Sequence record: NC_091964.1
Strand: one strand, 5' to 3'
Length of the DNA: 64,000 bases
The position numbers and the translations under genes are program-made. Below are positions 29,301 through 63,889 of the stretch, one piece after another. Below the pieces are notes generated by a model. That model saw only the letters and a program-made list of their open reading frames with translations. It was not told where the DNA came from and did not search any database. Numbering within the stretch: the first letter of the stretch is position 1; each line of letters starts with the position of its first letter.

Positions 29301-30918
29301 GTTTAGCCGCTTCTTCCAGTGTAACACCATCGACCTTTATTTCCTTATACTTGCGACTCAAGCGGATATGGCGCTCGTGCTCTTGGCGAGAGATTACGCC
29401 TTTACGCAGAAGTTCCGCTGACTTAACAGCCACACCTGCTTCCAACGGGTTAGACGTATCGACGTTGATGACCGCGGGCAGGTCTTCTTTCACCGGTTTA
29501 TTCACAACACGAGCAGAGCGCTCAGGTGGAAGTTCCGGTACGTCTTCATCGGTGACTTCAGTAATGTCCTGGTTGTCCAGTTCATTTAGATCCATCACTT
29601 TATCCGTTAATGCAAGCTGTCGTCCACCTGCAAATTGAGGTGCAACCATACCCAAAGCACCACGGCGATCGGTCTGGCGCTCTTCCCCCTGCTCAGGAGC
29701 TTCTGTATCGTCCTCTACGACGCTCGCATCACTATCCCCTGCCGTTACCATACCGATAGTTTCAGGCTTGTCAGCTTCGCTCTCAGGCACGGTTTCAAGG
29801 ATAACATCACGCTGATCTAACTGGCGAAATGCCATCATGTTTGACAGGTAGTTGTGGAAACGCTGAGTCATGGTTTGAATACCAGACTTCTCACGCCACT
29901 CGTTCAACTTGGCCATAGACAGGACGTTGTACCGACCACCCACTGTAAAGACGAAGAATACTTTTTCGTAGTGGGCAGGATCGATAGCGTTCAGCTTAGA
30001 GTCTTCCCGCTTCTCGCCTAACCAACGCCACAGATCGACTAACTGCAACGAGTCGTCGTCAGGGAACCAACCAATCGTTACACGGGTCCAGGCTTCAAAG
30101 CCAAGATCACAATCGCAACCTTCCAGATCTATTTCAGCGTCATCGGACCAACCGAGCGTAGCTTCATCGAAAGATTCAAAACCTTCGTTCAGTTCCTTAA
30201 CAGCAGCATCACCCAGAATACGATCGAGGTTGTCTGCTAACGGGGCGAAAAGCTCGCGGAAAGAAGTGATACGTGTTTCATCAGCACGCAACTTACCTTC
30301 AAAGAACTCGGGGCGCTGAGTTCCATCCACGCCATGTGCATGCGCCGCCTGTTCGTATTCTTCCACCGCGTGGAACTTGTTACGAGGGGGCAACACTTCC
30401 GGCAGGTTGAAGAAGATCAGGTGGTTACGAGTAGACTCCTTCGCAACAGCCGCTACCGTATCGCAGAGTGTACCATAAAGGTTATTCCAGCGTTGGATAC
30501 GCGCCCAGGCTGTTGGGAGGTAACGCCAGCGAAGAGGGATCATCGCATAGTTGAACACGATAGGATAGCGCTTATCCATCAGCGCTAATGGTAGCTTCGT
30601 TACCCGTTTTACCTTACGGTTCTTCTGGTAATAGAAGCGAATCATGTTCTTGATCTGGAAGGCAGGGATAAAGCGTGGGTTACCATCTTTCTGCGTCATG
30701 TCCTCAACGTGGTGAACATAATGCTGACGATTAAACCCGCGGGTAGGGAAGTAATCCTCTTCCGGGCCCAGGTCTTGTGCTGCGATGGGTAAGTAGTGCA
30801 ACGCTACGTTCTTCGGCAGATTCCAGTTATCGGATTCGAATGCTTTCGGATTAGGTAGGTTACCTTCTGTTCGAGCTGAATAGCGGTATAACCACGTTTC
30901 AAGTTCGAGTTCGGTCAT
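26308..30918 (-). CDS. Virion RNA polymerase beta subunit, N-terminal/main part (phiKZ gp178-like)
   Basis: PFAEYDDGKRVNFINIQQDH, EKNETWEDS, GGDKLVLSNQLKS double-psi barrel motifs. Confidence 0.9.
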   Translation of the reverse strand: MTELELETWLYRYSARTEGNLPNPKAFESDNWNLPKNVALHYLPIAAQDLGPEEDYFPTRGFNRQHYVHHVEDMTQKDGNPRFIPAFQIKNMIRFYYQKNRKVKRVTKLPLALMDKRYPIVFNYAMIPLRWRYLPTAWARIQRWNNLYGTLCDTVAAVAKESTRNHLIFFNLPEVLPPRNKFHAVEEYEQAAHAHGVDGTQRPEFFEGKLRADETRITSFRELFAPLADNLDRILGDAAVKELNEGFESFDEATLGWSDDAEIDLEGCDCDLGFEAWTRVTIGWFPDDDSLQLVDLWRWLGEKREDSKLNAIDPAHYEKVFFVFTVGGRYNVLSMAKLNEWREKSGIQTMTQRFHNYLSNMMAFRQLDQRDVILETVPESEADKPETIGMVTAGDSDASVVEDDTEAPEQGEERQTDRRGALGMVAPQFAGGRQLALTDKVMDLNELDNQDITEVTDEDVPELPPERSARVVNKPVKEDLPAVINVDTSNPLEAGVAVKSAELLRKGVISRQEHERHIRLSRKYKEIKVDGVTLEEAAKPPIQDIWNFKPAQIPDIPNVVDKGMLQSSLINFDTEYVEKVMPKDTANMVLAIQKAGIAVTGFEREEFSDALSKTIDYRVKVTPVHGKESTLSFQLPKIDENGKYMINGVRYYMRKLRADMPIRKINTHTVALTSYYGKLFVERSQKKVASFDNWILSALTSEILDGSRVKGVVYGNSYGEQQPVPRIYSAIAQSYLEMQIGDIHFHFDYEGMEKNFPGVALPKTKNQDWPVGRKGNEIVYMDRNGRLKVKGQDIGTIPSLIDLDDNTAPAEIVVLRVMGHEIPLGIVLAYMFGLNKLANRLYGSPVSTESYSEYYSEQYGYISFEHDNTVPNGVYPRRRIKGAKKDTAPNEFEIVFADEVWVLPKDQSYASLIFASLNQWKKQLRTIQVAELNDKAYYTPMFMANGLGNRHLNEIGLIEDMFLDPIAIENLTMMKEPTNMRDLFIRAADMLVDDNYKSDLDTSLMLVKGYERMSGAVYKAIVDSVRNYRNKPVSVKTSVDLNPFEVLTSIQKDPSVSLVEDSNVIHNLKEKENMTYSGTGGRSKVAMTRRTRAFHKTDLGVRSEAGVDSGDVGINMFMPPDPNITSLRGTVQTVDPEKVSPTQLVSTSMLMSPFAEYDDGKRVNFINIQQDHVVAIAESQEMAVRTGYDQVVAHRTDDLFSVTAKDDGKVVSVTDRVITVQYKNGKQKAFQIGRRFGVVTGHVVPHNIVPRMKAGDSFKKGAVICHNEGFYTPDRRDPTSSALKQGCYPYTVLIEKNETWEDSSLMSPELAYKMRANVTHIRTLFVRFDNAIHNLVSVGEEVDIDTVLAVIEDKVSAGVGSDNLDALNLLSRPTPRANNSGKVEEIQVIYFGDKDDMSPSVRKVADKYDRVRGQLARELNNGDATTGEITTPARVDGISVDIDMMAIRIFITEERIMSGGDKLVLSNQLKSVSAGEQRGPTYTASELWPGSGVRKIDLEFSYRAEEARIVHSSIMAGMSIICQEFIGFSMVQAYDS

Positions 30919-32552
30919 TTAGTCGGTCCCCCGGTAATTTGTAACAGTAACAATTCGATGTTGTCGTTTGCTGCTGACAGTACGAGTTTGTTATCTGCCC
31001 CCACATACCAGTCACGTTTTGACTTAAGGCGTTGATATTCATCACGCGCCTCTTTCGACATCGCTCCGATACAAGATTCACGGTCACCATCGAAGTCACC
31101 GCCCTGAGCTTTAATACGCGCGGTATGCGGAGACATTGTTTCTACAAATGGTGAATCGAGATCCTGATCAGGGAAGAACGGTGCAATATGGTCCGGTCCG
31201 ATAGGCATCCAGTCGTCGCCAAGTTCTGGCAGTTCACGGCTATTCACCGTGGTACGCATGAAGATATTTCCTATGTACGTAGACCCATCCCCTGCTACGG
31301 GATAACGTGTGGCACTGGCAATGTTGTTGTTCCAGTCGCGATACCCTGATACGTAAAACAGAGTTGCGAGGTTTAATGGATAGACTTTCTTAGGGTCTTT
31401 CCCTTCAGGGAGTTCGTCAATGTCAGCGAAGATACGGAACCCATCGTCACCGGCGTAGACTAATCCTAAGTAGCACCCATCTATATTTATAGGACGGTTG
31501 CGTAAACGTTTTTTACTAAAGCGTTTTACTAAGGAGTTAAAGCCTTCGGTGGTAGTCCAGAGTTCACGTTGATCCGCACTGAGCTCTACGAGTTTACGCT
31601 TGAGCGTCTTACGGTCTGTCAGGTAGATCTCCTGGGCAGCTGATGCACCGAAGATGTTACCTACCCAACCACTGCGTAAATAATACTCAACCAGCGGCTT
31701 AAACATTACAATGGTTTGAAGCATACCCGTTTGGATCGTGTTGATACCAGGGGTTTGCTTAGAGCCGATACGCGGAGAACTCAGCGTCATTGGCGAAATT
31801 ACGTTAGCAGTACCGTAGACAACAGTACGACTTGCCCATTTACCCAGGATGAATCCACGCTTTCCTTTAATAATGCTAAAGAAGTAGTCGAAGATTTGCT
31901 CGGAGGTTTTCTGTAAAGAGGCACGAGCGGGGTTAAGGATGGGATCGTTACGACCGGCAGAAGTAGAGGAGATGGTAGACGCAGATGCAATCAGACTACG
32001 ATACATCCCGTTTACTTCATCTTCTGTCCCTCTGCCAGTTTCTGACGTGGTGTAATCACGTAGACCAGCGGGCAGCACGAGGTATTTATCATGCAGCGCT
32101 TTACTTTTGTTTTCCTCTATAAGACGAATACGCAGTGAGCGCAGCGATGAGTCTGTACGCGGGAGCTGTAGCTCTTCGAAGTGCTCGACGAAGAACGCAA
32201 ATCCTGTGTTCCCTTCGGCAGGTGAAGATGCAACGAAGTCTTTCGTCTCTTCATCCCAAATCGCGTAGCGAGTACCAAGGATAATACCGCGGTACAAATC
32301 TTTCAACGTTGACAAACGTTTGAATATCAGTGAATGGAAGATTTTGGTATTAAGTTCAATATACCCGAATCGCCGGTCACGTTCTTCGGACCCAACTGGT
32401 CCAAATATTTCAGCACTGAATAACCCGTTCTGATTAAAGATGCTTGTACCACTTTCGAAGATCTCGTTAGTTGTACAGCGCCCCATCTGACGAACGAGTT
32501 CCGCATTCGGTTGCAGTATTGAAATATTGAAAGGTATTTCTTCAATCCGCAT
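30915..32552 (-). CDS. Virion RNA polymerase beta' subunit, N-terminal catalytic part (phiKZ gp180-like)
   Basis: GLFSAEIFG...FGYIEL, LVLPAGLRD, KGKRGFI, RYPV, catalytic GGDFDGD. Confidence 0.92.
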   Translation of the reverse strand: MRIEEIPFNISILQPNAELVRQMGRCTTNEIFESGTSIFNQNGLFSAEIFGPVGSEERDRRFGYIELNTKIFHSLIFKRLSTLKDLYRGIILGTRYAIWDEETKDFVASSPAEGNTGFAFFVEHFEELQLPRTDSSLRSLRIRLIEENKSKALHDKYLVLPAGLRDYTTSETGRGTEDEVNGMYRSLIASASTISSTSAGRNDPILNPARASLQKTSEQIFDYFFSIIKGKRGFILGKWASRTVVYGTANVISPMTLSSPRIGSKQTPGINTIQTGMLQTIVMFKPLVEYYLRSGWVGNIFGASAAQEIYLTDRKTLKRKLVELSADQRELWTTTEGFNSLVKRFSKKRLRNRPINIDGCYLGLVYAGDDGFRIFADIDELPEGKDPKKVYPLNLATLFYVSGYRDWNNNIASATRYPVAGDGSTYIGNIFMRTTVNSRELPELGDDWMPIGPDHIAPFFPDQDLDSPFVETMSPHTARIKAQGGDFDGDRESCIGAMSKEARDEYQRLKSKRDWYVGADNKLVLSAANDNIELLLLQITGGPTK

Positions 32553-32577
32553 GGGTTGTCCTCACAAGGGTGGACTT

Positions 32578-35500
32578 ATGGCTAAAGAAAAAATCGACTT
32601 CGATGATGGACTCAACGATTTCGACATGAATATGGACGGGTTCGACGATGATCCGTTTAACCCCCGAGAGTCCTCGGGCGGAAGTCGAAGCCCTGTTACG
32701 AAGGTTGGTAAGTCCATGTTGTCTGGCGCTGGCCAGGAAACCAAGAACCCTACCTTCTATAAAAACGTATTGAAAGCAGCGATGCCGGATTCCTTCAGTG
32801 TAATGCTCGACAATGTCGACACCACGATGGATATCACCTCGCGTACTTATAATCAGGCGATGCGTGAAGCACGTCCGATGATGGTGCAGGCTCGCAGAGT
32901 TGCGGGCTCTATTAACCGTCTCGTTCCTTCTCCCTTCCAATCTAAGATTGATGCATATCTTAAGTCAAAAGATAAGAAAGGCTTAGATAACGTAGAAGTT
33001 GACATGGAGGAAGCGGGTGTTGCTCAGGGCATGGGTGACATCTTTGCTGAGAAGGAAAACGATGATCAGAAGCTTGAAAAAGCCGAGAAGCTCATCGAGT
33101 TCGTTAACGAAAAAGAATATCGTCAAAACGTACTTGGTCAACTTCAATCGATCAACCGTCAGCTTTCAATCCAGACACAAAACCAACTGCGCGTACAACG
33201 TGCATGGCAGCAGAAGTCTCTTGAAGTCCAGTTACGTCAGCTTTATGTTAGCCGTCGTACAATGGAAATCACTAAACAAGGCATGGAAGAAAACTCAGCT
33301 CTGTTACGTGACATCGTCAAGAACACCGGTCTTCCTGATATTCAGAAAGAACAGCAATCTGAAACACTCGCTCGTTTAACGCGTGAACGTGTCTTCGGTG
33401 CTGCTCAATCTAAAGTCGCTGACTGGGCACGTCAAAACCAATACCTGCGTGCAGTAGGTAAACGTGCGACCGATGCTATTCGCAGTAAAGTAAACGAGTT
33501 CCAGTTCGCATTCCAGTCAGCCGCTGATATGTTCGAGTCAGCTGAAGAGCAAATGGCGGCTGCCAGAGAATACGGCATCGACACCACTCAGATGGCTGGG
33601 GAACTCGCCGGTGCTAACGTAGCAAATCGCATTGGTGGTTGGTTTGGTAAGAACGTCGGTAAACGTCTGAAGTTAGACCGCGCTGATAACTTCTTCCGTA
33701 CCATTAACCACAAAACAGCGAATGTTGCTCATGTTGGCTCTCGTTTTGGGAAAAAGTTAAAACGTGGCGACAGTCGTGTTGGTCACTGGATTGGGGATAT
33801 CCTGGATGTTCCTTTCCGTGCCGATACAACGGTAGCCCAGGGCGGGTTAGCTAACCTTGAGATGGACCCTGGCCGTATGGGGACTGAGAACCGCAAGCTG
33901 CGTGCGTTAGAGGAAACCTTACCAGGTTACCTTAGCCGTATTCTGCAAGAGGTCACTGGTATCCGTACAGGCGAGCTTCCTGAACGTTTGGTTGTCGATC
34001 CACAGCGCGGGACTTTTATGGCGCTGAAGGAATCTACTGCTAACTTAGCTCAACGTGTTCTGTCTGATGGGGCTATTGAGAGTTCTCAGAACAACCTTAA
34101 TAGCCTTATTAAAGATATGGGTGGCGATAAGCTTTCCAGAAAAGACAGAGTCGAATTGGCCAAGTACCTACGTGAGAAATCGAAAGATCAAACGTGGGGG
34201 TTTTCACCAGAAGCTTTACTGGATGAGAATAATGGTCTTTCTGGCAGACTGCGTGGTAGACTAGGGGATTCCCTTTCTGCTCGCTATGGCCTCGTCAAGG
34301 ATGAGAATGGTAAGTGGAAAGCACCATTGTCGGGAATGTCTGGTATTCGTTCTCTTGAGCGTGATGCTAAGTCTTACGGCAATTTCCGTGATTATAGCTC
34401 CGAGGTTTACCGGAACGTAAAAGCGATTCATTCACTCGGCGGTATCGAACAACTCTTGGAAGCTGGGTTAGTCAGATGGGACGACGATACTCAGACCTAT
34501 GAGCTCGATTCCAATTACGTTGAGAGACGCAGCAATGCAAAATACAGAAAGCTCCAAAGAAGAGGAAAGCTATCTGGGGACAGTGAAGTGGGGGCTGGCA
34601 ATAACGGCCCTCGGCCTGGTGGTGATAACCCTGGGACTCCGAAGCCTGGGCCGCTCCCTATGGGATCTCCCCTCGGAGGTGGTGAAGAAGGTGATCAAGG
34701 CTCTAGGATAAGTCGTTGGTTTGGGCGTGGAGGTGGTGGGGGTGGCAGCGATAAAGCTATCATCCGTGCTATCCGTGATCAGACCGAGTCTATCTTGGAC
34801 GCTTTCGATAACATGCCAGTACGTGATATCCAGGAAGAACAAGCCGATTACTTGGCGGATATTCTGGAACGTCTCGAAGCGGGCGTATCAACGTTCGGCG
34901 GAGCTGGTTCTCCCCCACCTCGCAAAGGCCTACTGCGTCGTGGCGCGGGTCTTGCGAAGAGCGCGGTTAAGGGCATGTGGAAAGCGGGTGCTTACCCGTT
35001 CAAATTTGCTCGTGTTATGGCTAAACAAGCTTTCCGTCCCGTTAAGTGGCTTGGGAAGAAATCGTTCAAACGCATTAAAGGCTTAGGGGAGAAAGCCTGG
35101 GGTAAAGCATCTGCTCTTGTAACCGATGTTTACATCAAGGGACAGGACGGACTTAAGCGTGCTCTTGAACGCGGCGTCATGATTGCCGGTGGTTACACCG
35201 ATGTGAATACGGGGAAAATCATTAAGTCCATCAAGGACATTACCGGACCCGTTATTAACAATGCAACTGGTGCTATTGTCCTCACTCAAGAAGACTTTGA
35301 TAATGGATTGATGAACTCTTTGGGTAAACGACTTAAGGTTGGATTGATCGGCGGCATTAAGTCAGCCATCAAACGAGCAGCTGGGATAATCGCATCGCCG
35401 ATTACTAAGCCGCTTGGTTGGGTGAAGTCAGGCATCGCACTAGCGAAGAAAATGCTCCTCACCCCTCCTGATGTCTATTTACGTGGCCAGATGGATAAAC

Positions 35501-38500
35501 CTGTTCTGTACGGTCAGCAAATGTACAACGGCATGTACTGGTCGGCTGCTACTAATAAAGTAGTACGCTACATCGGTGACATCGACGGTGACATTTATAC
35601 CTGGGATCGAGAGACAATGCAGAAACGTATTGTCTTGACTGCGCAGCAGATCCAAGATCCAGGGTTAGTTGACTACGCAGGTAAACCACTCAAAGGTTTC
35701 ATGAAGAAATGGAAAGACCGTATTGGCGGCGCTATTGACTTCTTGAAGAAAAACCTTAACCCGATGAACTGGATTCGTCGTGGTAAAGATCTGGTTAAGA
35801 AAGGACTTGGCTTTGTAGGTGGGGCGTTTGGTAAAGTTGGTAAGGCTCTCGGTCTTAAGGGAATCGAATCCGGCGGTTGGACCAAGCGTATCTATCGTCT
35901 GCTTTGGAACAAGTTTAACGACCTCCCGTTAAACACAGGTCTTAAAGCAGCAACAAGTCAACTGGGTGAGGCAGCAGGTAAAGCCGGAAGTCGAATCAAG
36001 GATTGGTGGGCTAACCGGAAAGGCTTTGGTCTAAAAGGCAAGTTAGGCGGGTCTAAGATCGGTATGCTGTTGTCAGGGCTCTGGAGTAAGAAGGGTAACT
36101 GGCGAGACTTGTTCAAACGCGATTCTCTCAAAGACCGTTTGGACGAAATGCGTGACCGTGAAGGTTCCTGGGTAAACCGTGCAGCCAAAGCAGCAGGGCG
36201 AATCAAGGAGTCTGTAAAAGACAAAGCTGACAAAGCCAGGAAGTTCCCATGGCTTGCTACAGTTATGGGCGGGTTCGGAATTGTTAGAGGCGCATTGAAT
36301 GTCCTCAAGGATAAACTCCTTGGTGGTATTGGCGCCTGGATTCCGAAGATCCTCACTGCTATTAAGAACACTAAGCTCGCTCAGTCTGGTATGAGCATGT
36401 TGGGTGATCTGTTAGGTGGCGGTGGAGGAAGAGGACGTGGCGGATTTATCCGACGTGGGGCGAGATGGTTAGGTAAGGCTGCATGGAACACTGTACGCCA
36501 TCCAATCAAAACGCTGGGCAAAGTCATCAAGTCTCCGTTTAAACTTGCTGGCGGTGCCTTACGTCTCGGTATGAAGGCACTCCCTTGGGTAGCTCGCGGT
36601 GCAATGATGTTATTAACCAGTCCTGTTGCATGGGCAGTTGCTGCCGCGGCAGGTGCAGGTTACCTCATCTATAAAGGCTACAAAGCGTATCAGGGACGTA
36701 TCACATCTGTACGTGAGATGCGTCTTGCCCAGTATGGTTTTGCTAAAGGCGAAGACAGTGATAAACTGGGTAAAGTATTAGCGCTTGAAGAGGCTGTCCT
36801 GAAGGCAGTGAAATGGGATCAGAACGGTGTCCCATCCCTGGGTCCAATCAAGTACCCGGAACTGATTCAGGCATTCGGTATTCAGATGACAGCTGAGAAA
36901 TCAGTTATGTCATGGGCGAACTGGTTTGCTAACCGCTTCCGTCCAGTGTTCTTAAAGAACATTCAGGAGATCCGTCGCCTTGACGAGAAAGCTACTATTC
37001 TGGATGCGAACACCTCTCTTGCTAAAGGGCAGTTACCGTCGTATGCGTTAGCAACACGTTTACCGGATACTAACCCTGATGGTAGTAAGGGTCCGTACTT
37101 CATCGAAGATTCTCCGTTCCAGAACCACTCCTGTATTATCGGAACAGATATTGTTGATTCTACCATCCAAGCAGTTGTGGGTGAGTACAGCAAAGATGCG
37201 AAGAAGTTCAAGGAGAAAGCTCGTACTGATGCGGGCTTAGCGAATGCGAAGAACGTACAGCTTACACCGACTAACGGTAAGAACATGAAGGCTGGGTTAC
37301 AGCTTCAGAAAGACGACCGTGTGTTTGGTGCAGGTGACGTTAAAGCAAACGTTGGTAAAATAACGGGTGATCCAGATAAAGACCTGAAGATCATTCAAAA
37401 CAACCTGATCGATGACGTGACTGCGATCCGTATGAAGTTATACGGTATGTTGGAACTGTCAAAGTCCCAGGTTAATATCATCTGGCGTTTAGAAGACCAG
37501 TTACTCAAGGACCAGAACATTGTTGTTCGGAACAAGGTAGCGGAATTCACGGGTGATAAGAATAAGATCGTTCAGGCATGGGCTCCGGTGTTTGGCGTAA
37601 GCCTTGGCGTAGCCGCTGACGTTAATGACTGGCAGTTCTGGTTCGATCGTCGTTTCTTACCAGTCTTCCTGAACTTTGTAACACGCGGTTCTAAATGGCT
37701 GGGCACGGATAACCTTCTCACGAAGATTCGTTCTGCTCACCCTGAAGTACAGTACAGCGTAGCAGAGTTTATGTCTGTCGCTAAGACAGAAGTCAACGGT
37801 CAGTCGACTTCAGTGTGGTCTGTTAATGCCTATCCGTTCCCGATGGAATCTGCTAACACGGATTCGTTGGTGATCAAAGGCAACATGGACTCGCTGAAAG
37901 AGCGTATTAAGGATGAGAAGTACGCAGAGCAGTTAGCTAAGAAGAACCCGAGTCTTAAGTACGACAAGAACGGGAAGTTGTTGAGTGACGCGGAGTACAT
38001 GAAGAAACTGGCGCAGATGCCTGGTAGCCCTCTGGCAACCAACGCAGCTAACGCAGCCTTCTTGGCTCAGCAAGGTGGTAACAGCATGCTTAACGGCGGC
38101 GGTGGCCTCCAGTCCTTCGACAACGACAAGTTCGCGTCTGTTGCTGAAATTACCCCTAACGGCGGTAAGGCTTCGGATCTTCCTCAGGTAGATGGCGGTG
38201 CAGTTGCCGCTGAAAGATCTCCTGAGAAGCGCTTTGCGATGTTGCGACCTCTGTTTGAGGCAGTGGCAAAAGCGATTGGTGTGGACGTCCCGACTCTAAC
38301 GGCGTTCGCAATGCAGGAATCGGCATTTAACCCGCTAGCTGCGGCGAAAGGTTCAAGTGCGAAAGGCTTGTTCCAATTCATCGACGGTACATGGCAGGGC
38401 TATGTAGGTAAGCTGAAAGAATTCGGGTTCAGTAATCCTCAGGTGACCGACCCTGTAGCTAACACGGTGGCAGGAGCAATGTTCATCCGTGATAACATCA

Positions 38501-39402
38501 ACGCATTGAAAGGTACTATCGGGCGTATGCCTAACGTACCGGAACTTTACCTGGCACACTTCTTGGGCCCAGGCGGCGCTCGTCGTGTTCTCTCCCAGCC
38601 TGACAACGCAAGTATCATGACTGGGGTTAACAACGATCAGATCGCGGCTAACCAATCTGTGTTTAAGAACATTTCTACCATTGCTGATATTAAGTCGTGG
38701 GCTGCACGTATGATGCAGAAAGGAATCGTCTTTGCCAGCAAGAATGCTCCAGGAGGGATTCCTTCATCGGGAACCTTCTCTACTAACCTTGGTCCTTCAC
38801 CGACTGAGGCAGGTAGTATTGTTAACACCGCTCAAATGGGTACTCCTACTCCTGCGAGCAGTGGAGGCGGTGCTGGGGCGATGCCTGCTATGGCTCCTTC
38901 TATTAGTGTGGGCGGCGGTTCTCCTGCCCCTGTCAGTAATTCAGAAGTCTTGGCAGGCGGAATGCGTAAGGTAAGTTCACCATCTCCAGTAGCATCGAGT
39001 GCTGTTCCAGCAGTCCCGGTTCCACCGAATCGTGAAGGCGTTGAGAAACAGCGCGAAGTACAAGCAGAGACGCAGGCGGTACGTGTTCAAACCGAACAGG
39101 TTAATGCAGCTACGGCTCAAGCGCGTGCTCGTGCAACTGGCGCAACAATGCAACAGGCTCGTCAGACTCATGACGTTCAGGTTGAAATCCGTGATGCTGT
39201 ACAAGGTAGCGAATCGATCCTCGGTGAGATCCGCGATTTCCTCAAGGGTAGTAGCGGCGGTCCAAGCCAGCAGAATTCTCCTCCGCCTAATGGGCAAGAG
39301 CAGCAGAAGGAAGCTATGCTGAAGAACGCTTCGATGAACCCTCCCGTAGGCCAGAAGCCAGGGAACCAAAGGCCTTTTAATAGTAGTAGAAGGCCTGCGT
39401 AA
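32578..39402 (+). CDS. Tape-measure-like tail protein with lytic transglycosylase domain (phiKZ gp181-like; start revised)
   Basis: About 2270 aa, Lys/Gly-rich helical. SLT motifs AMQES, AKGLFQFIDGTW, LYLAHFLGPGG at ~38250-38590. Confidence 0.88.
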   Translation: MAKEKIDFDDGLNDFDMNMDGFDDDPFNPRESSGGSRSPVTKVGKSMLSGAGQETKNPTFYKNVLKAAMPDSFSVMLDNVDTTMDITSRTYNQAMREARPMMVQARRVAGSINRLVPSPFQSKIDAYLKSKDKKGLDNVEVDMEEAGVAQGMGDIFAEKENDDQKLEKAEKLIEFVNEKEYRQNVLGQLQSINRQLSIQTQNQLRVQRAWQQKSLEVQLRQLYVSRRTMEITKQGMEENSALLRDIVKNTGLPDIQKEQQSETLARLTRERVFGAAQSKVADWARQNQYLRAVGKRATDAIRSKVNEFQFAFQSAADMFESAEEQMAAAREYGIDTTQMAGELAGANVANRIGGWFGKNVGKRLKLDRADNFFRTINHKTANVAHVGSRFGKKLKRGDSRVGHWIGDILDVPFRADTTVAQGGLANLEMDPGRMGTENRKLRALEETLPGYLSRILQEVTGIRTGELPERLVVDPQRGTFMALKESTANLAQRVLSDGAIESSQNNLNSLIKDMGGDKLSRKDRVELAKYLREKSKDQTWGFSPEALLDENNGLSGRLRGRLGDSLSARYGLVKDENGKWKAPLSGMSGIRSLERDAKSYGNFRDYSSEVYRNVKAIHSLGGIEQLLEAGLVRWDDDTQTYELDSNYVERRSNAKYRKLQRRGKLSGDSEVGAGNNGPRPGGDNPGTPKPGPLPMGSPLGGGEEGDQGSRISRWFGRGGGGGGSDKAIIRAIRDQTESILDAFDNMPVRDIQEEQADYLADILERLEAGVSTFGGAGSPPPRKGLLRRGAGLAKSAVKGMWKAGAYPFKFARVMAKQAFRPVKWLGKKSFKRIKGLGEKAWGKASALVTDVYIKGQDGLKRALERGVMIAGGYTDVNTGKIIKSIKDITGPVINNATGAIVLTQEDFDNGLMNSLGKRLKVGLIGGIKSAIKRAAGIIASPITKPLGWVKSGIALAKKMLLTPPDVYLRGQMDKPVLYGQQMYNGMYWSAATNKVVRYIGDIDGDIYTWDRETMQKRIVLTAQQIQDPGLVDYAGKPLKGFMKKWKDRIGGAIDFLKKNLNPMNWIRRGKDLVKKGLGFVGGAFGKVGKALGLKGIESGGWTKRIYRLLWNKFNDLPLNTGLKAATSQLGEAAGKAGSRIKDWWANRKGFGLKGKLGGSKIGMLLSGLWSKKGNWRDLFKRDSLKDRLDEMRDREGSWVNRAAKAAGRIKESVKDKADKARKFPWLATVMGGFGIVRGALNVLKDKLLGGIGAWIPKILTAIKNTKLAQSGMSMLGDLLGGGGGRGRGGFIRRGARWLGKAAWNTVRHPIKTLGKVIKSPFKLAGGALRLGMKALPWVARGAMMLLTSPVAWAVAAAAGAGYLIYKGYKAYQGRITSVREMRLAQYGFAKGEDSDKLGKVLALEEAVLKAVKWDQNGVPSLGPIKYPELIQAFGIQMTAEKSVMSWANWFANRFRPVFLKNIQEIRRLDEKATILDANTSLAKGQLPSYALATRLPDTNPDGSKGPYFIEDSPFQNHSCIIGTDIVDSTIQAVVGEYSKDAKKFKEKARTDAGLANAKNVQLTPTNGKNMKAGLQLQKDDRVFGAGDVKANVGKITGDPDKDLKIIQNNLIDDVTAIRMKLYGMLELSKSQVNIIWRLEDQLLKDQNIVVRNKVAEFTGDKNKIVQAWAPVFGVSLGVAADVNDWQFWFDRRFLPVFLNFVTRGSKWLGTDNLLTKIRSAHPEVQYSVAEFMSVAKTEVNGQSTSVWSVNAYPFPMESANTDSLVIKGNMDSLKERIKDEKYAEQLAKKNPSLKYDKNGKLLSDAEYMKKLAQMPGSPLATNAANAAFLAQQGGNSMLNGGGGLQSFDNDKFASVAEITPNGGKASDLPQVDGGAVAAERSPEKRFAMLRPLFEAVAKAIGVDVPTLTAFAMQESAFNPLAAAKGSSAKGLFQFIDGTWQGYVGKLKEFGFSNPQVTDPVANTVAGAMFIRDNINALKGTIGRMPNVPELYLAHFLGPGGARRVLSQPDNASIMTGVNNDQIAANQSVFKNISTIADIKSWAARMMQKGIVFASKNAPGGIPSSGTFSTNLGPSPTEAGSIVNTAQMGTPTPASSGGGAGAMPAMAPSISVGGGSPAPVSNSEVLAGGMRKVSSPSPVASSAVPAVPVPPNREGVEKQREVQAETQAVRVQTEQVNAATAQARARATGATMQQARQTHDVQVEIRDAVQGSESILGEIRDFLKGSSGGPSQQNSPPPNGQEQQKEAMLKNASMNPPVGQKPGNQRPFNSSRRPA

Positions 39403-47053: not shown

Positions 47054-47653
47054 ATGAGCTCTATTACAAATAACGTTGTTAATACCGTAACACTGACCGA
47101 TGAAAAATCCTTCAGTGCTGAATTTATCTTCTCTAATAAAGAGACTGCGCTGCACGGCGTACATACTGCGCTGCTAACCATTCTGGCCGGTGCGGCGGTG
47201 GAGCAGGAGTTCAATCGCTCCAATATCTTCTCCTGTAAATACAACGACGTTTTCACCGGGAACGTTACCATCGGTACTCGCGGAGATCGCATCATTATTT
47301 CTGATGGGAATAGCGAGTTTGATATCAGCTGCTACGAAGCTCAGACGTACATCCTGGAACCATTCGGGTTGTTCATGCCGGACTTCGTTCCAATGATCAA
47401 TGAACATCTCTTCGGTTGTGAAGGCATAACCTGCTGGATGATTGAAGAACTTGGCGGGTATTACAGTGGCCAGGATTCTGATCTCTGGATCCTTACCAGT
47501 CAGGGTATGTTGATTGCTACTGAAGAACTACGCAAGGAAGATATGTCCACGTACCTTTCTCCGGTAGCTGTATACGACCTTAATCACCAATGGACAGAAG
47601 AGGAGGTAAAGAATAGCGAACAAATCAAAGCGATCATTGCAGCATCCTATTAA
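47054..47653 (+). CDS. Hypothetical protein
   Basis: SD aagga; 199 aa. Confidence 0.65.
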   Translation: MSSITNNVVNTVTLTDEKSFSAEFIFSNKETALHGVHTALLTILAGAAVEQEFNRSNIFSCKYNDVFTGNVTIGTRGDRIIISDGNSEFDISCYEAQTYILEPFGLFMPDFVPMINEHLFGCEGITCWMIEELGGYYSGQDSDLWILTSQGMLIATEELRKEDMSTYLSPVAVYDLNHQWTEEEVKNSEQIKAIIAASY

Positions 47654-47670
47654 TTTTTAGGTAAGCCTAC

Positions 47671-47806
47671 TATAGTTTGACAACCCACTCCATTTAACCC
47701 CTTGTGCTCGGTCAATGGAACATTCCAGGAAAATAAGACACTCCGGGTTGTCAGCTATAAGAGGTGGGGGATGGAAATCCCCCGTACCTCCCACCTTTTA
47801 TTTTTT
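47671..47806 (+). ncRNA. Candidate structured small RNA ending in a terminator
   Basis: About 15-bp closing stem 47671-47686/47745-47759, internal TCCATT/AATGGA stem, a GGAA-loop hairpin and a U-tract. Confidence 0.4.
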
Positions 47807-47821
47807 GTTCGGAAGAAAAAG

Positions 47822-48103
47822 ATGATTTACATGAACAAGCCGGGTGAATACATTATCGACCGCGATCATTGCGCTATGCGCGTGGTGGATGGTCGACTGG
47901 AGATTGCTACTAAGGATCGTACTTTCTCTTTCGCCAAAGGTGATTCTATTAACCCGCGCGTCATTGTACTTTCCGTACAGGGCGAGCGTATCGTCAACCT
48001 GCAATTTGTACCTGTCGCTGATCAGACTAAATCTGTCTACATGCCTGATTACGATACCGCCGAGAAGTTCTTAACGTTTGTTGAGCACTTCATTAACAAC
48101 TAA
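47822..48103 (+). CDS. Small hypothetical protein (start revised)
   Basis: ATG 47822 after GGAAG. The ORF-track 5' extension runs through the structured intergenic region. Confidence 0.6.
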   Translation: MIYMNKPGEYIIDRDHCAMRVVDGRLEIATKDRTFSFAKGDSINPRVIVLSVQGERIVNLQFVPVADQTKSVYMPDYDTAEKFLTFVEHFINN

Positions 48104-48119
48104 GTAAGGATAAGAATAA

Positions 48120-49019
48120 GTGGAACTTAAACTGATCGATAAAGAAGAATGTGCTTCTCGCGCCAGTGAGATTTTGGGCATGGCGATGTTCCGCCCGGCT
48201 CATCGCGTCGTTAACTTCTTCGATAAGAAGAACGGTCGCATTTACCTTACGGAGTTTCAGGACTTCATGGCTCCGAAGAAAGAAGACTTCAATATCCAAA
48301 CCCAGAAGAGCCTGGCTATTGAGATCGACGCTCCGGATATTGCAGCGCTGCTACCGGATGGAATCGATCTGGAGTTTGCTATTGTTTACTGCGTTCAGCC
48401 GACTCTGTATTTCGTTCAGGTGAAAGATCGCTTCTTCGCCGTGGGACAGCGCCTTAATCATCAGCGTATGTCTGAAGAACGCGCAGATGGCCTCGAGCTC
48501 ATTGAAGAAGTTGGGCTTGATGGCGAATTCCGTTTTGTGTTCCTGCCGCGTGTCGGTATGTGTATCCGCGGTCTTTCTCGTTATGATTACCGTGGTCGCC
48601 GTCACGACTTTGAATTCGCTGCCGACGAAGAGGAAATGAATCGCGTCAGTTTCAGCGGTCTTTTCCATCTGGTTCGCTCTACTGGTATTCCGGTACTGGA
48701 AGAGTTTGGCGAAGACGAAGACCTGGTCCGTAAATTCCTGGGCGCCACTGTTGGCGGCGATGAAGAATCCGCATGGCGTCTGCGTAACTGGACTTACCCT
48801 ACCTTCTGGGATGGCGATAACGAACCACGCCGTCGCTGGGGCAAAGGCGAACTGCTTCGTGGGCGTGGTCGTTTTGCTAACGCGGCGCGCGCCAAAGACG
48901 TATCATTTGAGGCAGGTTCTGGCAAAGTAACCGTCCAACAATTCGAGGGCGAAGATCGGGTGGAAACCTGCACGCCGTGGCTCGAATATTCATTCGCAGA
49001 AACTTTTTACGGAAGCTAA
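48120..49019 (+). CDS. Hypothetical protein
   Basis: SD aagga with GTG start; 299 aa. Confidence 0.65.
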   Translation: MELKLIDKEECASRASEILGMAMFRPAHRVVNFFDKKNGRIYLTEFQDFMAPKKEDFNIQTQKSLAIEIDAPDIAALLPDGIDLEFAIVYCVQPTLYFVQVKDRFFAVGQRLNHQRMSEERADGLELIEEVGLDGEFRFVFLPRVGMCIRGLSRYDYRGRRHDFEFAADEEEMNRVSFSGLFHLVRSTGIPVLEEFGEDEDLVRKFLGATVGGDEESAWRLRNWTYPTFWDGDNEPRRRWGKGELLRGRGRFANAARAKDVSFEAGSGKVTVQQFEGEDRVETCTPWLEYSFAETFYGS

Positions 49020-49023
49020 AAAA

Positions 49024-49173
49024 ATGACACAGCCAAAAGATGATTTCGATATCGATGCACTCGCTAACGTTGACTTCGACGCCGTTGATAAACGCGTAGA
49101 AGAAATGCAAGCGGGCGGCGGAGAAGTGCTCGAGCCGAGCAATAAATGCGAATCAGGCGCATGTGAAATCTAA
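49024..49173 (+). CDS. 49-aa acidic miniprotein ending in the NrdA-tail-like motif CESGACEI (not in ORF track)
   Basis: MTQPKDDFDIDALANVDFDAVDKRVEEMQAGGGEVLEPSNKCESGACEI*; starts 4 nt after the upstream stop and fills the gap to a terminator. Confidence 0.75.
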   Translation: MTQPKDDFDIDALANVDFDAVDKRVEEMQAGGGEVLEPSNKCESGACEI

Positions 49174-49180
49174 AGTAATT

Positions 49181-49212
49181 GAGGGGTCTTCGGACCCCTC
49201 TTTTATTTTTTT
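49181..49212 (+). terminator. Intrinsic terminator (UUCG loop)
   Basis: GAGGGGTC-TTCG-GACCCCTC-TTTTATTTTTTT. Confidence 0.9.
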
Positions 49213-49271: not shown

Positions 49272-50207
49272 ATGCTCGAGTCAATATTGTCAGCATTAAA
49301 CAAACCTTCAAGGCAACCGGGGGTAATAACTGGTGTGTATGAAGCACAGCCTATTATCACTTCGGGGGACTTTAACTTCTATAACGTTGTAGGGGCGTCA
49401 GTAAGGGTAGGAGATTATCTCTACATTGCACCTGGTAACTATTCTACCGGTGGCAGTTACGTTCTTACAAATAACTTCTACCGCTACAATCTTAAGACCT
49501 TTAAGCTAGAGCAGCTAAGTGCTGCACCTAAAGCAGTCTCCTTTGCGTCGCTGTGTCATGACAACGGAAAGATATACATGTATGCAGGCATACCCGCAAG
49601 CGGCAGTAACAGTCCGCTTTGTATATATGACATTGCATCAGGGACATGGACTAACACTGGGCTAGCTAACCAGGCCCGAAAAAACTGCCGGACCTTTGTA
49701 TACAACGGACGGTTATACACCGTTGGCGGCGGTTTGTCTTCGGGTGGTGTTTATTACGATGTCATCTCGTACGACCTTAAAGATTATTCATCTATTAACC
49801 ACGGTAACTTCCTGAACCAAACAGGTGCTGGATATTTATTCAGCGAAGGCGCTGGGGTACTAATTGACTCGAAGTTCTATTTCTCGCGAGGCGGTAATAC
49901 GAGTAACGATGCGTGGATGGTATTTGATGCCGCTAAACTGACTCTCAAGGTACTGACAATGAACCCTGCGGCGGTGGCCGGGGGAGTACCGGTCTTGTTC
50001 GGCGACAAGATTGTCATGCGTAACGGTAACGCTTCTATCTCCCTGTACGAACCATCAACGGACAAGTGGACGGTCGTTCAGGCTGAAACTAACGCATCAT
50101 ACTCAGGTAATGGTCAGTCATTACATTTTGAGTACGATGGTTCTCTTTGGACTAAATACTTGCAAAGTAACGATAATACCGCAAGACGGTTCTGGCGAAT
50201 TAATTAA
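49272..50207 (+). CDS. Kelch-repeat beta-propeller protein (start revised to MLESILS)
   Basis: SD aagga; repeats such as GDYLYIAPG...YRYN, GKIYMYAG...IYDIASGTW, GRLYTVGGG...SYD. Confidence 0.8.
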   Translation: MLESILSALNKPSRQPGVITGVYEAQPIITSGDFNFYNVVGASVRVGDYLYIAPGNYSTGGSYVLTNNFYRYNLKTFKLEQLSAAPKAVSFASLCHDNGKIYMYAGIPASGSNSPLCIYDIASGTWTNTGLANQARKNCRTFVYNGRLYTVGGGLSSGGVYYDVISYDLKDYSSINHGNFLNQTGAGYLFSEGAGVLIDSKFYFSRGGNTSNDAWMVFDAAKLTLKVLTMNPAAVAGGVPVLFGDKIVMRNGNASISLYEPSTDKWTVVQAETNASYSGNGQSLHFEYDGSLWTKYLQSNDNTARRFWRIN

Positions 50208-50629: not shown

Positions 50630-51093
50630 TGCTACTACTCAATAAAGAACGTTTTCTCAAGCTCCCTGCCGGTATCTTCTATATTGAGGTTAGCAGCAGA
50701 GATTGCGACCCATCAACTGCGATGGTAAGTAACCCTATCAAAATTAAAGGCAATACCTTCGAGGATTTCGATGCCCAAGAAGGTAACCTTTCTTTCGCCC
50801 CTACGCCGGAAGATAACGGTCAGGAAGACTGGCCTTGTATTGGTAATGTATACGATGAAGAGAAAGGTTTCTCGGATTCGATGGATTTAACCTTAACTCT
50901 CACCCGTGGTGGTCTTATCGGAAGTGATGATTCTCGATTTATCGTCTTTGAACCTTCTGACATCAATACCATGAAGGAATGGATGGAAAAGGCATTTATT
51001 GCTATGGCTGCTTGGTTAAAAGAGCAGCCCGCTAAATACCCTGAATTAATGAAGGCTGTCGATAACACCTACAACGATAAGGATTTTAATTAA
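50629..51093 (+). CDS. Hypothetical protein (start revised, TAATG coupling)
   Basis: Stop/start overlap at both ends. Confidence 0.65.
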   Translation: MLLLNKERFLKLPAGIFYIEVSSRDCDPSTAMVSNPIKIKGNTFEDFDAQEGNLSFAPTPEDNGQEDWPCIGNVYDEEKGFSDSMDLTLTLTRGGLIGSDDSRFIVFEPSDINTMKEWMEKAFIAMAAWLKEQPAKYPELMKAVDNTYNDKDFN

Positions 51094-52067
51094 TGGAAGT
51101 ATCTAAAGTAAAACCTATGCAGGCCGATATCATCTACTACCACGGTGATTGTGTTGATGGTATGGCAGCTGCCTGGGTAGCGTGGCGATGGGCGCGGAAA
51201 CACCGTCCGGACAGCCTTGTGCATCTTTTAGAGGCTCATTACGGGAAGCCGTTGGACATCCCGGAAAACTGGTATAATACCGAGGACGATGTAGTTATGC
51301 ACGTCCTGGACTTCAGTATCCCGGTGGAAGACCTGAAAGAAGTCTGTAAGAAGTGTAATGTCAAGACACTTTACTATATCGATCATCATCCTACCGGTAA
51401 GAGCCAGATTGAAGCTGCTGTTGCAGAAGCGTCAGACTGGGGCGTTGATATGGCGGCATGGTTCGATAATGGTCCCGGTAAAAGCGGCGCGTCGCTGGCG
51501 TGGGATAACTACTTCCCTAACGAGCCTGTTCCGTTATCGATTTTACGTGTTGCTGATCGCGATACCTGGACCTTTAAGTATCTTGATTCCAAGACCTTCC
51601 ATGCGTACGCTGCGCTGTTCTTAAAAGATGAAACGCGTTGGGATAGCGTGTTTGAGAACGATAAGTTTAACGAGAACATTGTTAAGGGTTCGGCTATCCG
51701 TTTGCAGATCGAATCTATCGTTAACAAATATACTCAGCCTGAGTTACATCAGAACGTTGTTTACGGCGAATATAAGGGCGTCGCGGTTAACGTCGGTCGT
51801 GAGTTCGTATCCGAGGTGTGTAATAACATCCTGGAGTCTAATCCGCAGATCGATTTCGTTCTGGGTTATCAAATCCATCCGATGCACGTCAAGTTCGATT
51901 TCCGTGCAAGGCAAAGTGACGACATCAATGTTGGGACGATTGCTAAGTACTGGGGCGGGGGCGGACATCCGGCAGCTGCGGGGCTGTTAATTCCTAAAAC
52001 CCATTGCTATTCTTCGGGTACTCGCCTACAGGACTTCTTGAAGAAAGTTAAACTAAATCTTTTCTGA
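51093..52067 (+). CDS. DHH/DHHA1 family phosphoesterase
   Basis: YHGDCVDG, LDFS, IDHH, SGASLAW, DRDTW, GGGGHPAAAG. Confidence 0.88.
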   Translation: MEVSKVKPMQADIIYYHGDCVDGMAAAWVAWRWARKHRPDSLVHLLEAHYGKPLDIPENWYNTEDDVVMHVLDFSIPVEDLKEVCKKCNVKTLYYIDHHPTGKSQIEAAVAEASDWGVDMAAWFDNGPGKSGASLAWDNYFPNEPVPLSILRVADRDTWTFKYLDSKTFHAYAALFLKDETRWDSVFENDKFNENIVKGSAIRLQIESIVNKYTQPELHQNVVYGEYKGVAVNVGREFVSEVCNNILESNPQIDFVLGYQIHPMHVKFDFRARQSDDINVGTIAKYWGGGGHPAAAGLLIPKTHCYSSGTRLQDFLKKVKLNLF

Positions 52068-62782: not shown

Positions 62783-63889
62783 ATGCAATACAGCACTTTT
62801 GACCAACGTAAAAATGACCCATTAAAAGAACCAATGTTCTTTGGTCAGTCAGTCAACGTTTCACGCTATGATCAGCAGAAGTACGAGATCTTCGAAAAGC
62901 TGATTGAAAAACAACTTTCCTTCTTCTGGCGCCCGGAAGAAGTAGATGTCTCTCAGGACCGTATCGACTTCAATGCGTTACCGGACCATGAGAAACACAT
63001 CTTTATCTCCAACCTGAAGTACCAAACTCTTCTGGACTCCATTCAAGGCCGTAGTCCTAACGTCGCGTTGTTACCGTTAGCGTCTCTGCCGGAACTGGAA
63101 ACGTGGATTGAAACCTGGGCGTTCAGTGAAACTATTCACAGCCGTTCCTACACTCACATCATCCGCAACATCGTAAACGACCCGGCACTGATCTTCGATG
63201 ATATCGTTGTCAACGAACATATCCTGGCGCGTGCTAAGCCAATCGCTAAGTACTACGACGACCTGATCGAAATGACGCAGCGCTACAACCTCGATGGTGA
63301 GATGACTGGCGTTAAGCTGCGTGATATCAAAAAGCAGCTCTACATCTGCCTGATGTCAGTTAACGCATTGGAAGCAATTCGCTTCTACGTTTCCTTCGCA
63401 TGTTCGTTCGCGTTCGTTGAACGTAGTCTGATGGAAGGTAACGGTAAGATCATTAAGTTGATCGCTCGCGATGAAGCACTGCACCTGACCGGTACTCAAC
63501 ACATGCTGAACCTACTGCGCAGCGGTGCTGATGATCCTGAAATGGCAGAGATCGCTAAAGAGTGCGAACAGGAATGCTATGATCTGTTCCTGGAAGCAGC
63601 TAATCAGGAAAAAGAGTGGGCCGATTATCTCTTTATCGACGGTTCAATGATCGGTCTGAACAAAGATATCCTGCACAAGTACATCGAGTACATTACGAAC
63701 ATCCGTATGCAGGCTGTAGGGCTCGCTCTGCCGTTTAAAACCAAAGAGAACCCTATCCCATGGATTAACGCTCACCTCGTGTCAGACAACGTACAGGTCG
63801 CACCACAGGAGGTTGAAGTTTCATCCTATCTGGTAGGTCAGATCGATGCTGATGTCAACACAGAAGACTTCGGTGACTTCCAACTATAA
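62783..63889 (+). CDS. nrdB: Class Ia ribonucleotide reductase beta subunit
   Basis: [25 protein letters not shown] (radical Tyr), LEAIRFY, RDEALH, C-terminal [13 protein letters not shown]; closely follows E. coli NrdB. Confidence 0.97.

Follow-up and report, generated by a model that had tools for sequence, protein, structure and literature searches.

The redox-active C-terminal tail of the α subunit of ribonucleotide reductase (RNR) is reduced by thioredoxin or glutaredoxin, and it then reduces the disulfide in the active site. In Escherichia coli the α subunit, NrdA, is a protein of 761 aa ending in CESGACKI, the two cysteines being residues 754 and 759. The yeast protein Sml1 is an RNR inhibitor that does not copy the Cys pair, and it was reportedly found by Zhang and colleagues in 2007 to interfere with the C-terminal domain of R1. 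In mouse RNR the oxidised tail must leave for re-reduction, and activity increases up to 3-fold if the active site is meanwhile reduced directly by a second reductant (PMC4078304). E. coli Grx1 reduces RNR via a specific protein-protein interaction (PMC11567954). Redoxins encoded beside or within RNR genes reduce the tail; these thioredoxin-fold CxxC proteins include glutaredoxins of the T4 NrdC/NrdH type and, in Facklamia ignava, a Grx domain joined to NrdB (PMC6187632). The α subunit itself can be divided between polypeptides: in Aeromonas phage Aeh1, nrdA is split, and its two halves, which together make up the complete gene, reassemble (PMC3045599).

The window analysed here, a stretch of 64,000 nucleotides, corresponds to bases 62001-126000 of the Serratia jumbo phage PCH45 (MN334766.1; 100% identical), a nucleus-forming chimallivirus (PMC11797060). 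It encodes a 49-aa protein, gp101, that can be set beside each of these systems. Like the tail of E. coli NrdA, it has an acidic, flexible segment ahead of a terminal motif, and the last 12 residues of the two align, with the C-x4-C pair, the Gly and the terminal Ile in common and the C-terminus equally distant in both. Unlike NrdA, the miniprotein is free-standing, with its own start codon, putative ribosome-binding site and terminator, and it has neither the catalytic barrel nor the ATP cone. Sml1 is likewise small and is reported to act at the tail-dependent regeneration of RNR, where the miniprotein may act as well, but no sequence relationship between the two was detected in Pfam and PDB searches of the miniprotein. 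As with the NrdC/NrdH-type glutaredoxins, gp101 would represent an alternative wiring of reducing power to class I RNR; whereas those redoxins reduce the tail, the miniprotein appears to imitate the tail itself, without a thioredoxin fold. The split nrdA of Aeh1 is similar in that part of an α subunit is a separate phage polypeptide, and differs in that no α subunit was found in the carrier genomes checked. A further point of comparison is phrog_10239, a family that is unannotated and takes in just part of the miniprotein family.

Results

A 49-codon gene precedes an intrinsic terminator in PCH45

The gene is already in GenBank, as hypothetical protein QFP93264.1; the numbers gp100, gp101 and gp119 used here are positional CDS counts anchored on the published gp107-gp111 operon and the tail fibre gp111. 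The original prediction, made from the DNA letters, was of a stand-alone 49-aa open reading frame starting 4 nt after the upstream stop and ending ahead of a UUCG terminator, and its coordinates and translation were reproduced exactly. The features around the gene, in positions of the window, are as follows.

48120-49019, plus strand: upstream gene gp100 (299 aa), a near-ORFan
49011-49015, plus strand: putative Shine-Dalgarno-like GGAAG, read from the sequence, 8 nt 5' of the gp101 ATG
49024-49173, plus strand: miniprotein gene gp101, ATG start, 49 codons plus stop; QFP93264.1
49051-49110, plus strand: acidic segment (residues 10-29), helices predicted at 10-13 and 18-29; not related to NrdA or to the NrdB tail
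49114-49125, plus strand: linker G31-G32-G33-E34, with E34 invariant in a 12-sequence alignment
49135-49170, plus strand: residues 38-49, copy of the NrdA redox tail, with Cys42 at 49147-49149, Cys47 at 49162-49164 and a terminal Ile49
49181-49210, plus strand: intrinsic terminator with an 8-bp G+C-rich stem, UUCG loop and T run

The stop codon of gp100 (49017-49019) is separated from the gp101 ATG by a gap of 4 nt, and the two genes are probably co-transcribed. Beginning 8 nt past the gp101 stop, the terminator hairpin GAGGGGTC-TTCG-GACCCCTC (49181-49200), followed by the T run, folds with -21.2 kcal/mol (z = -6.9), and none of 200 shuffles was as stable. A run of seven A residues at 49018-49024 (TAAAAAAATG) spans the gp100 stop and the gp101 start, the two frames being offset by +1. 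Beyond the terminator lie a gene for a Kelch-repeat protein (49272-50207), related to a virion-structural PHROG, and, two kb further on, a DHH/DHHA1 phosphoesterase gene (51093-52067; phrog_4771, E 4.5e-58). Elsewhere in the window, large open reading frames encode an SMC/AAA-like protein of 820 aa (5819-8281), a protein of 522 aa with an RNase H domain (12210-13778), and proteins of 1536 and 2291 aa (26308-30918, minus strand, and 32527-39402).

We considered gp100 as a conserved partner of the miniprotein and rejected it: it has one relative only (98% identical), and the upstream genes differ among lineages. Searches with gp100 gave no Pfam, PHROG or NCBIfam match and no similarity to the upstream genes or fused partners of other members, and its single-sequence AF2 model (pLDDT 37) was unusable.

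For gp101 itself there was no match in Pfam or NCBIfam. Pfam, NCBIfam and the AF2 model gave no sign of a thioredoxin fold or a CxxC site, the cysteine spacing being C-x4-C. The catalytic body of NrdA is absent as well: gp101 has 49 aa as against about 760 aa, and the ten-stranded barrel was not matched by Pfam. An AF2 model built with the family alignment (mean pLDDT 63) consists of two short helical segments (residues 10-13 and 18-29) and a flexible tail. The N-terminal part had been described as acidic and probably amphipathic; it is acidic, and helicity is predicted for part of it, at the low confidence of this model. Mimicry of the NrdB C-terminal tail by the acidic N-terminal motif was a separate candidate that we discarded, since comparison with composition-preserving shuffles gave mostly p 0.3-0.6, i.e., was not significant.

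The C-terminus of gp101 matches the tail of host NrdA

To obtain the NrdA sequence, E. coli nrdB was located in genomes with phage nrdB DNA and the nrdAB operon was then fetched. Compared to the NrdA ending CESGACKI, gp101 ends in CESGACEI, i.e., seven of the eight residues are identical, each at the same distance from the stop codon, and, as in the NrdA tail, the C-x4-C pair stands two residues from the C-terminus. The C-terminal octamer of NrdA was invariant in 80 of 80 Enterobacterales species, and the family member of phage Alexandra has exactly the NrdA ending. When the last 20 residues of five family members, from five lineages, were compared with the NrdA tail, p values of 0.0002-0.0034 were obtained against composition-preserving shuffles. 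Alignment of the family with NrdA tails by hhalign gave a probability of 93.7% and E 1.9e-7 over 12 columns (residues 38-49), C-terminal in both, and nothing was aligned upstream of residue 38. In a search of the PDB with the family profile, positions 35/37-49 matched residues 745/747-761 of E. coli R1 at E 0.2-0.45, values that are weak because the match is short; the E. coli R1 chains were the only natural PDB proteins matched through to the C-terminus of both partners. A single-sequence PDB search with gp101 matched nothing. The pattern C..G.C.[ILVM]-stop ends one of 1059 open frames in the window, with 0.02 expected from shuffles, and in a further 651 kb of phage DNA (715 kb in total) it ends 11 family members only.

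Within the octamer, positions -7, -6, -4 and -2 are variable in the family and invariant in NrdA, which suggests that the determinants common to the family and NrdA would be C, G, C and the terminal Ile. For the tail serine, PCH45 and Yen9-02 use TCA, whereas nrdA and the other five members compared use AGC; since the same serine is reached through unrelated codons, selection is likely to have acted at the level of the protein. A recent capture of the 3' end of nrdA was thus rejected: identity at third codon positions is merely 2-6 of 8, and this, together with TCA versus AGC, argues against a recent remnant of nrdA DNA. Register, shuffle p values, PDB profile and hhalign all agree on the likeness to the NrdA redox tail that had been proposed for this peptide, and confirm that the gp101 C-terminus is, at the level of sequence, a precise mimic of the host RNR α tail. 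The motif string was not found in any open paper.

gp101 belongs to a conserved family of phage proteins

A profile search of 5.8 billion proteins yielded 71 clusters, and an exhaustive HMMER scan of 1.84 billion representatives yielded 65 clusters at E <= 1e-3, with matches that end no more than one residue short of the C-terminus. Full-length NrdA was not returned at E 1e-3 in the HMMER scan, in keeping with the roughly 15 bits that the tail contributes. The question posed at the outset of whether homologs conserve the Cys pair can be answered: C42 and C47 are invariant, and G45 and I49 occur in 90% or more of sequences. The ending C-x-x-G-x-C-x-[ILVM] is present in 67 of the 71 clusters, the remaining four having a C-x3-C variant, and 70 of the 71 terminate in Ile. 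Within the last 49 residues, each of the 71 clusters contains exactly two Cys, where a zinc-ribbon or DksA/TraR protein would have four metal-binding Cys/His. The GGG linker noted ahead of the Cys motif is kept, as GGGE, in 48 of the 71 clusters. Free-standing members have 45-60 aa, and the median net charge of the family is -10. Among described families, phrog_10239 (of unknown function) gave a weak match to gp101 (E 4.6e-4, residues 6-38); two of the relatives also match it, at E 1e-4 to 8e-4 and reaching the C-terminus, and four others do not. Judged by these profiles, gp101 belongs to a real, conserved phage family that is uncharacterised and in no curated library by name; no published function was found for any of its members.

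The tblastn search that had been suggested for relatives gave matches in enterobacterial jumbo phages and beyond. Jumbo-phage carriers include SA002, fHe-Yen9-02, the Alexandra/AD1/pEa_SNUABM group, the JA11 group, the Miami/phiKp_32 group and others; JA29 is syntenic with Alexandra and was therefore not counted as an independent lineage. Carriers were also found among the Chaseviridae, phages of ~52 kb, phiEcoM-GJ1 (GJ1), ST32 and the PYps phages among them. Klebsiella lambdoid prophages carry the gene between the antiterminator Q gene and the holin/lysozyme genes, and a scan of species-representative genomes for this prophage variant found nothing. No isolate phage with the P0046 variant (~105-kb, NrdD-bearing) was found. 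The hosts of the listed carriers are Enterobacterales, with the exception of one Stenotrophomonas phage, BUCTxx100.

Four carrier genomes have no class I α subunit by tblastn

With E. coli NrdA as the tblastn query, a search that may miss class II or III enzymes, no class I α subunit was found in the whole 212.8-kb genome of PCH45. The complete genome of GJ1 gave no NrdA either; one of the weak matches to this query there (NrdA residues 742-761, E 0.74) coincides with the ORF of the miniprotein. Erwinia phage Alexandra (99.3% of the genome) and Klebsiella phage phiKp_32 of the Miami type (99.1% of the genome) had neither NrdA nor NrdB. phiKp_32 carries DHFR, thymidylate synthase, thymidine kinase and MazG, and the published Miami genome note gives no RNR information; the phiKp_32 genome also has two annotated IS200/IS605 TnpB genes (L126:20198-21334 and 47337-48473). 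Four independent lineages are therefore without class I α, two with an orphan β subunit and two without class I RNR; the count covers PCH45, GJ1, Alexandra and phiKp_32, with SA002, Yen9-02 and the P0046 group standing outside this genome-wide comparison.

This result decides the first half of one option in the original prediction, namely a split RNR whose NrdA, encoded elsewhere in the phage genome, would lack its CxxxxC tail and have the peptide in its place. Split phage nrdA genes do exist, as in Aeh1 (PMC3045599), but tblastn searches with the E. coli protein found no nrdA at all in the four carrier genomes. Without a phage α subunit the split-enzyme reading fails; it is refuted for PCH45, GJ1, Alexandra and phiKp_32, and we give it practically no credence.

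The host-like nrdB without an adjacent nrdA that had been noted in the window was found again, and in PCH45 the absence of α extends to the whole genome. The gene is:

62783-63889, plus strand: gp119, orphan host-like class Ia β subunit NrdB (Pfam 3e-49), 80.6% identical to E. coli NrdB

The PCH45 protein keeps W48, D84, E115, H118, Y122, E204, E238, H241 and Y356, all iron ligands included, and its NrdA-binding tail is host-like. The GJ1 NrdB, 80% identical to that of E. coli, keeps the same residues, and among the Chaseviridae all records listed with the miniprotein were also listed with a PCH45-like NrdB. An intact orphan NrdB with a host-like NrdA-binding tail suggests that PCH45 and the Chaseviridae use host NrdA, and we infer a link between gp119 and gp101. 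Since two carrier lineages have no RNR gene of any kind, the link to an orphan NrdB is partial. A PCH45 Tn-seq preprint reports gp112-gp151 as non-essential except gp139 (10.64898/2025.12.19.695335); by positional count gp119 lies inside this block, and the RNR accessory genes are thus dispensable in the laboratory.

The same observations bear on whether the phage might slow the host enzyme. As a competitive decoy, a free tail would block the entrance to the NrdA active site or compete for reductant. All of the evidence for tail mimicry (identity, shuffles and hhalign) would serve this reading equally, the reported interference of yeast Sml1 with the RNR tail is a precedent for a small protein acting in this manner, and RNR-less carriers with thymidine kinase, dCMP deaminase or thymidylate kinase may not need de novo reduction. 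If PCH45 and the Chaseviridae use host NrdA, however, an inhibitor of that enzyme is improbable in those phages, where an intact NrdB would be useless were host NrdA blocked, and the strict conservation of both cysteines suggests redox chemistry over mere occupancy. Taken together, we consider a competitive decoy unlikely.

Host reductants are a second conceivable target. In PCH45 infection, host trxB is reported to contribute (log2FC 2.74, q 0.0086; PMC11797060), and the redoxins Trx and Grx1 of E. coli have the NrdA tail as a natural substrate (PMC11567954; PMC4078304). A strongly acidic peptide (median net charge -10 across the family) that copies this substrate might bind or trap host thioredoxin or glutaredoxin, redirecting reducing power or denying thioredoxin to competing phages, and the position of prophage copies in a moron slot would fit such a role. 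Against this, a substrate that switches reversibly between dithiol and disulfide is no trap for a redoxin, and titrated reductants would starve the RNR that PCH45 and GJ1 appear to need, so that we hold this reductant-directed mimicry to be distinctly improbable.

Host-like NrdB proteins similar to that of PCH45 are also encoded by Ea35-70, RAY, OBP, pEt-SU, AH04/06, Kc263, N1M2 and Aeromonas phages LAh10/D6, and these NrdB jumbo phages (Ea35-70, OBP, LAh10/D6, etc.) are missing from the list of phage NrdA proteins at 60% identity or more. By tblastn the miniprotein was not seen in many jumbo phages with a host-like NrdB, i.e., Ea35-70, RAY, OBP, pEt-SU, AH04, Kc263 and N1M2. Among Vibrio phage NrdA proteins (MW073017.1, HQ316582.1, MG592662.1 and MG592672.1), several matches end at residue 744 of the 761 of E. 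coli NrdA, and the C-terminal tails of these proteins may differ or be missing. A record labelled 'Staphylococcus phage Pel53' (PP952070.1, 53.7 kb) has a Chaseviridae-type NrdB, 73% identical to that of PCH45; its host label seems doubtful.

The miniprotein gene is often found among nucleotide-metabolism genes, and the module is fused to unrelated domains

In GJ1 the miniprotein gene lies 1.6 kb before the gene for thymidylate synthase (ThyA), in Alexandra two genes after that for dCMP deaminase, and in ~105-kb contigs next to genes for DNA polymerase A (PolA), NrdD/NrdG and ThyX; thymidine kinase is near it in further contexts. The gene is therefore often found among genes of nucleotide metabolism or replication. 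Neighbours vary between all lineages, and there is no recurrent maturase-type gene of the kind that would accompany a RiPP precursor.

Anti-defence genes are rarer neighbours. An Acb2/Tad1-like gene (L028:11855-12091) stands behind the lysis cassette of one miniprotein-bearing Klebsiella prophage, and in a 142-kb contig an Acb1 gene (L039:12088-12555) lies 2 kb downstream of the miniprotein. These two contexts are compatible with a decoy: some host factor for defence or quality control would recognise the C-terminus of NrdA and be misled by the peptide. Small acidic phage proteins are often mimics; no factor is known to recognise the NrdA tail. Defence systems have been found to respond to phage NrdAB activity, which would favour a defence decoy, but the DRT systems concerned sense dNTP levels and not the NrdA tail (preprint 10.64898/2026.10.27.754916). 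As neighbours from nucleotide metabolism also outnumber those from anti-defence, we judge a defence decoy to be very unlikely.

About 13 clusters consist of fusions, in which the module is attached to unrelated domains lacking conserved cysteines. The upstream genes concerned belong to at least four unrelated families, each of which occurs as a stand-alone gene in one genome and as an in-frame fusion with the module in another. In SA002 (L002:3665-4156), for example, the module is fused in frame to an upstream domain of ~110 aa that is a separate gene in a related contig (L041:9629-10183), and in a metagenomic protein, P0111 (228 aa), it forms the C-terminus behind a circularly permuted YpsA (cpYpsA) SLOG domain (Pfam 5.7e-14). 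The two main fused-partner domains have no conserved Cys, and HMM searches with them in PCH45, GJ1, Alexandra and the other loci compared gave no matches. On this evidence, the module appears to behave as a portable C-terminal tail on a flexible linker.

Such portability could also mean that the module serves disulfide-linked dimerisation, metal binding or a redox switch outside RNR altogether, its likeness to NrdA being convergent. This is favoured by the fusions, which involve the cpYpsA SLOG domain besides at least four unrelated families of N-terminal domains, and by the confinement of the NrdA similarity to 12 residues. Convergence would, however, have to account for a match in spacing, Gly, terminal Ile and distance to the C-terminus, often in all eight residues; for listed hosts that, one Stenotrophomonas phage excepted, are the Enterobacterales in which the octamer is invariant; and for a motif found nowhere else in 715 kb of phage DNA. 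A module independent of RNR is, in our assessment, rather improbable.

Discussion

We tentatively propose that gp101 is a diffusible surrogate of the host RNR α tail that re-reduces host NrdA. A booster of host NrdA re-reduction, which had been put forward as the second half of the option that included the split enzyme, is the best-supported of the readings considered, at a likelihood that we place somewhat below even. As a trans-acting copy of the redox tail, gp101 could be a portable electron shuttle, speeding or re-tuning host NrdA in phages that rely on the host α subunit, and in this capacity it would probably plug into the host's supply of DNA precursors.

In the mechanism that we envisage, gp101 would be made in the cytoplasm, and its Cys42/Cys47 pair would be reduced by host thioredoxin or glutaredoxin, like that of the NrdA tail. 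The reduced gp101 tail would then enter the active site of host NrdA and re-reduce the catalytic disulfide, acting while the tethered tail of NrdA is away for recycling and so providing a second route of re-reduction. The output of deoxynucleotides for phage DNA synthesis would thereby be raised. The acidic, partly helical N-terminal part may contribute solubility or docking.

Several lines of evidence argue for the surrogate tail: the identity and register of the ending, its significance against shuffles and a profile match to NrdA that is confined to the C-terminus; the conservation of C, G, C and I in the family, with the serine under selection at the protein level; and the absence of class I α from PCH45, GJ1, Alexandra and phiKp_32. 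Consistent with this, the orphan NrdB proteins of PCH45 and GJ1 are intact, implying a need for active host NrdA, the Chaseviridae records listed with the miniprotein all carry NrdB too, the gene often lies amid nucleotide-metabolism or replication genes, and host trxB contributes to PCH45 infection.

Other observations weigh against it. The tethered tail is already present at high local concentration, so that it is not evident what a free one would add. In many jumbo phages that encode a host-like NrdB, tblastn did not detect the miniprotein, two carrier lineages are without any RNR gene, the trxB phenotype is pleiotropic, and NrdB lies within a block reported to be non-essential in the laboratory. 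A pure RNR shuttle does not explain the fusions to unrelated domains in about 13 clusters, and the prophage copies occupy a moron slot, with an anti-defence gene nearby in one prophage and in one other contig. It is these fusions and the moron slot of the prophages that the surrogate-tail reading accounts for least well.

RNR sets the rate of DNA-precursor supply, and re-reduction by way of the α tail is part of every catalytic cycle. While the redox tail of RNR is known, its detached, virus-encoded form, as read from these sequences, is new. If the surrogate-tail reading is true, gp101 would be the first virus-encoded free enzyme tail of its kind and a new way to manipulate a central host enzyme with fewer than 50 residues. 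Together with the orphan NrdB it would make up a minimal 'RNR booster kit', which would help to explain the long-noted phages that carry nrdB alone (PMC3653736), and RNR enzymologists would have in it a natural trans-acting tail. More generally, phage open reading frames under the usual length cut-offs can encode precise mimics of the termini of host proteins.
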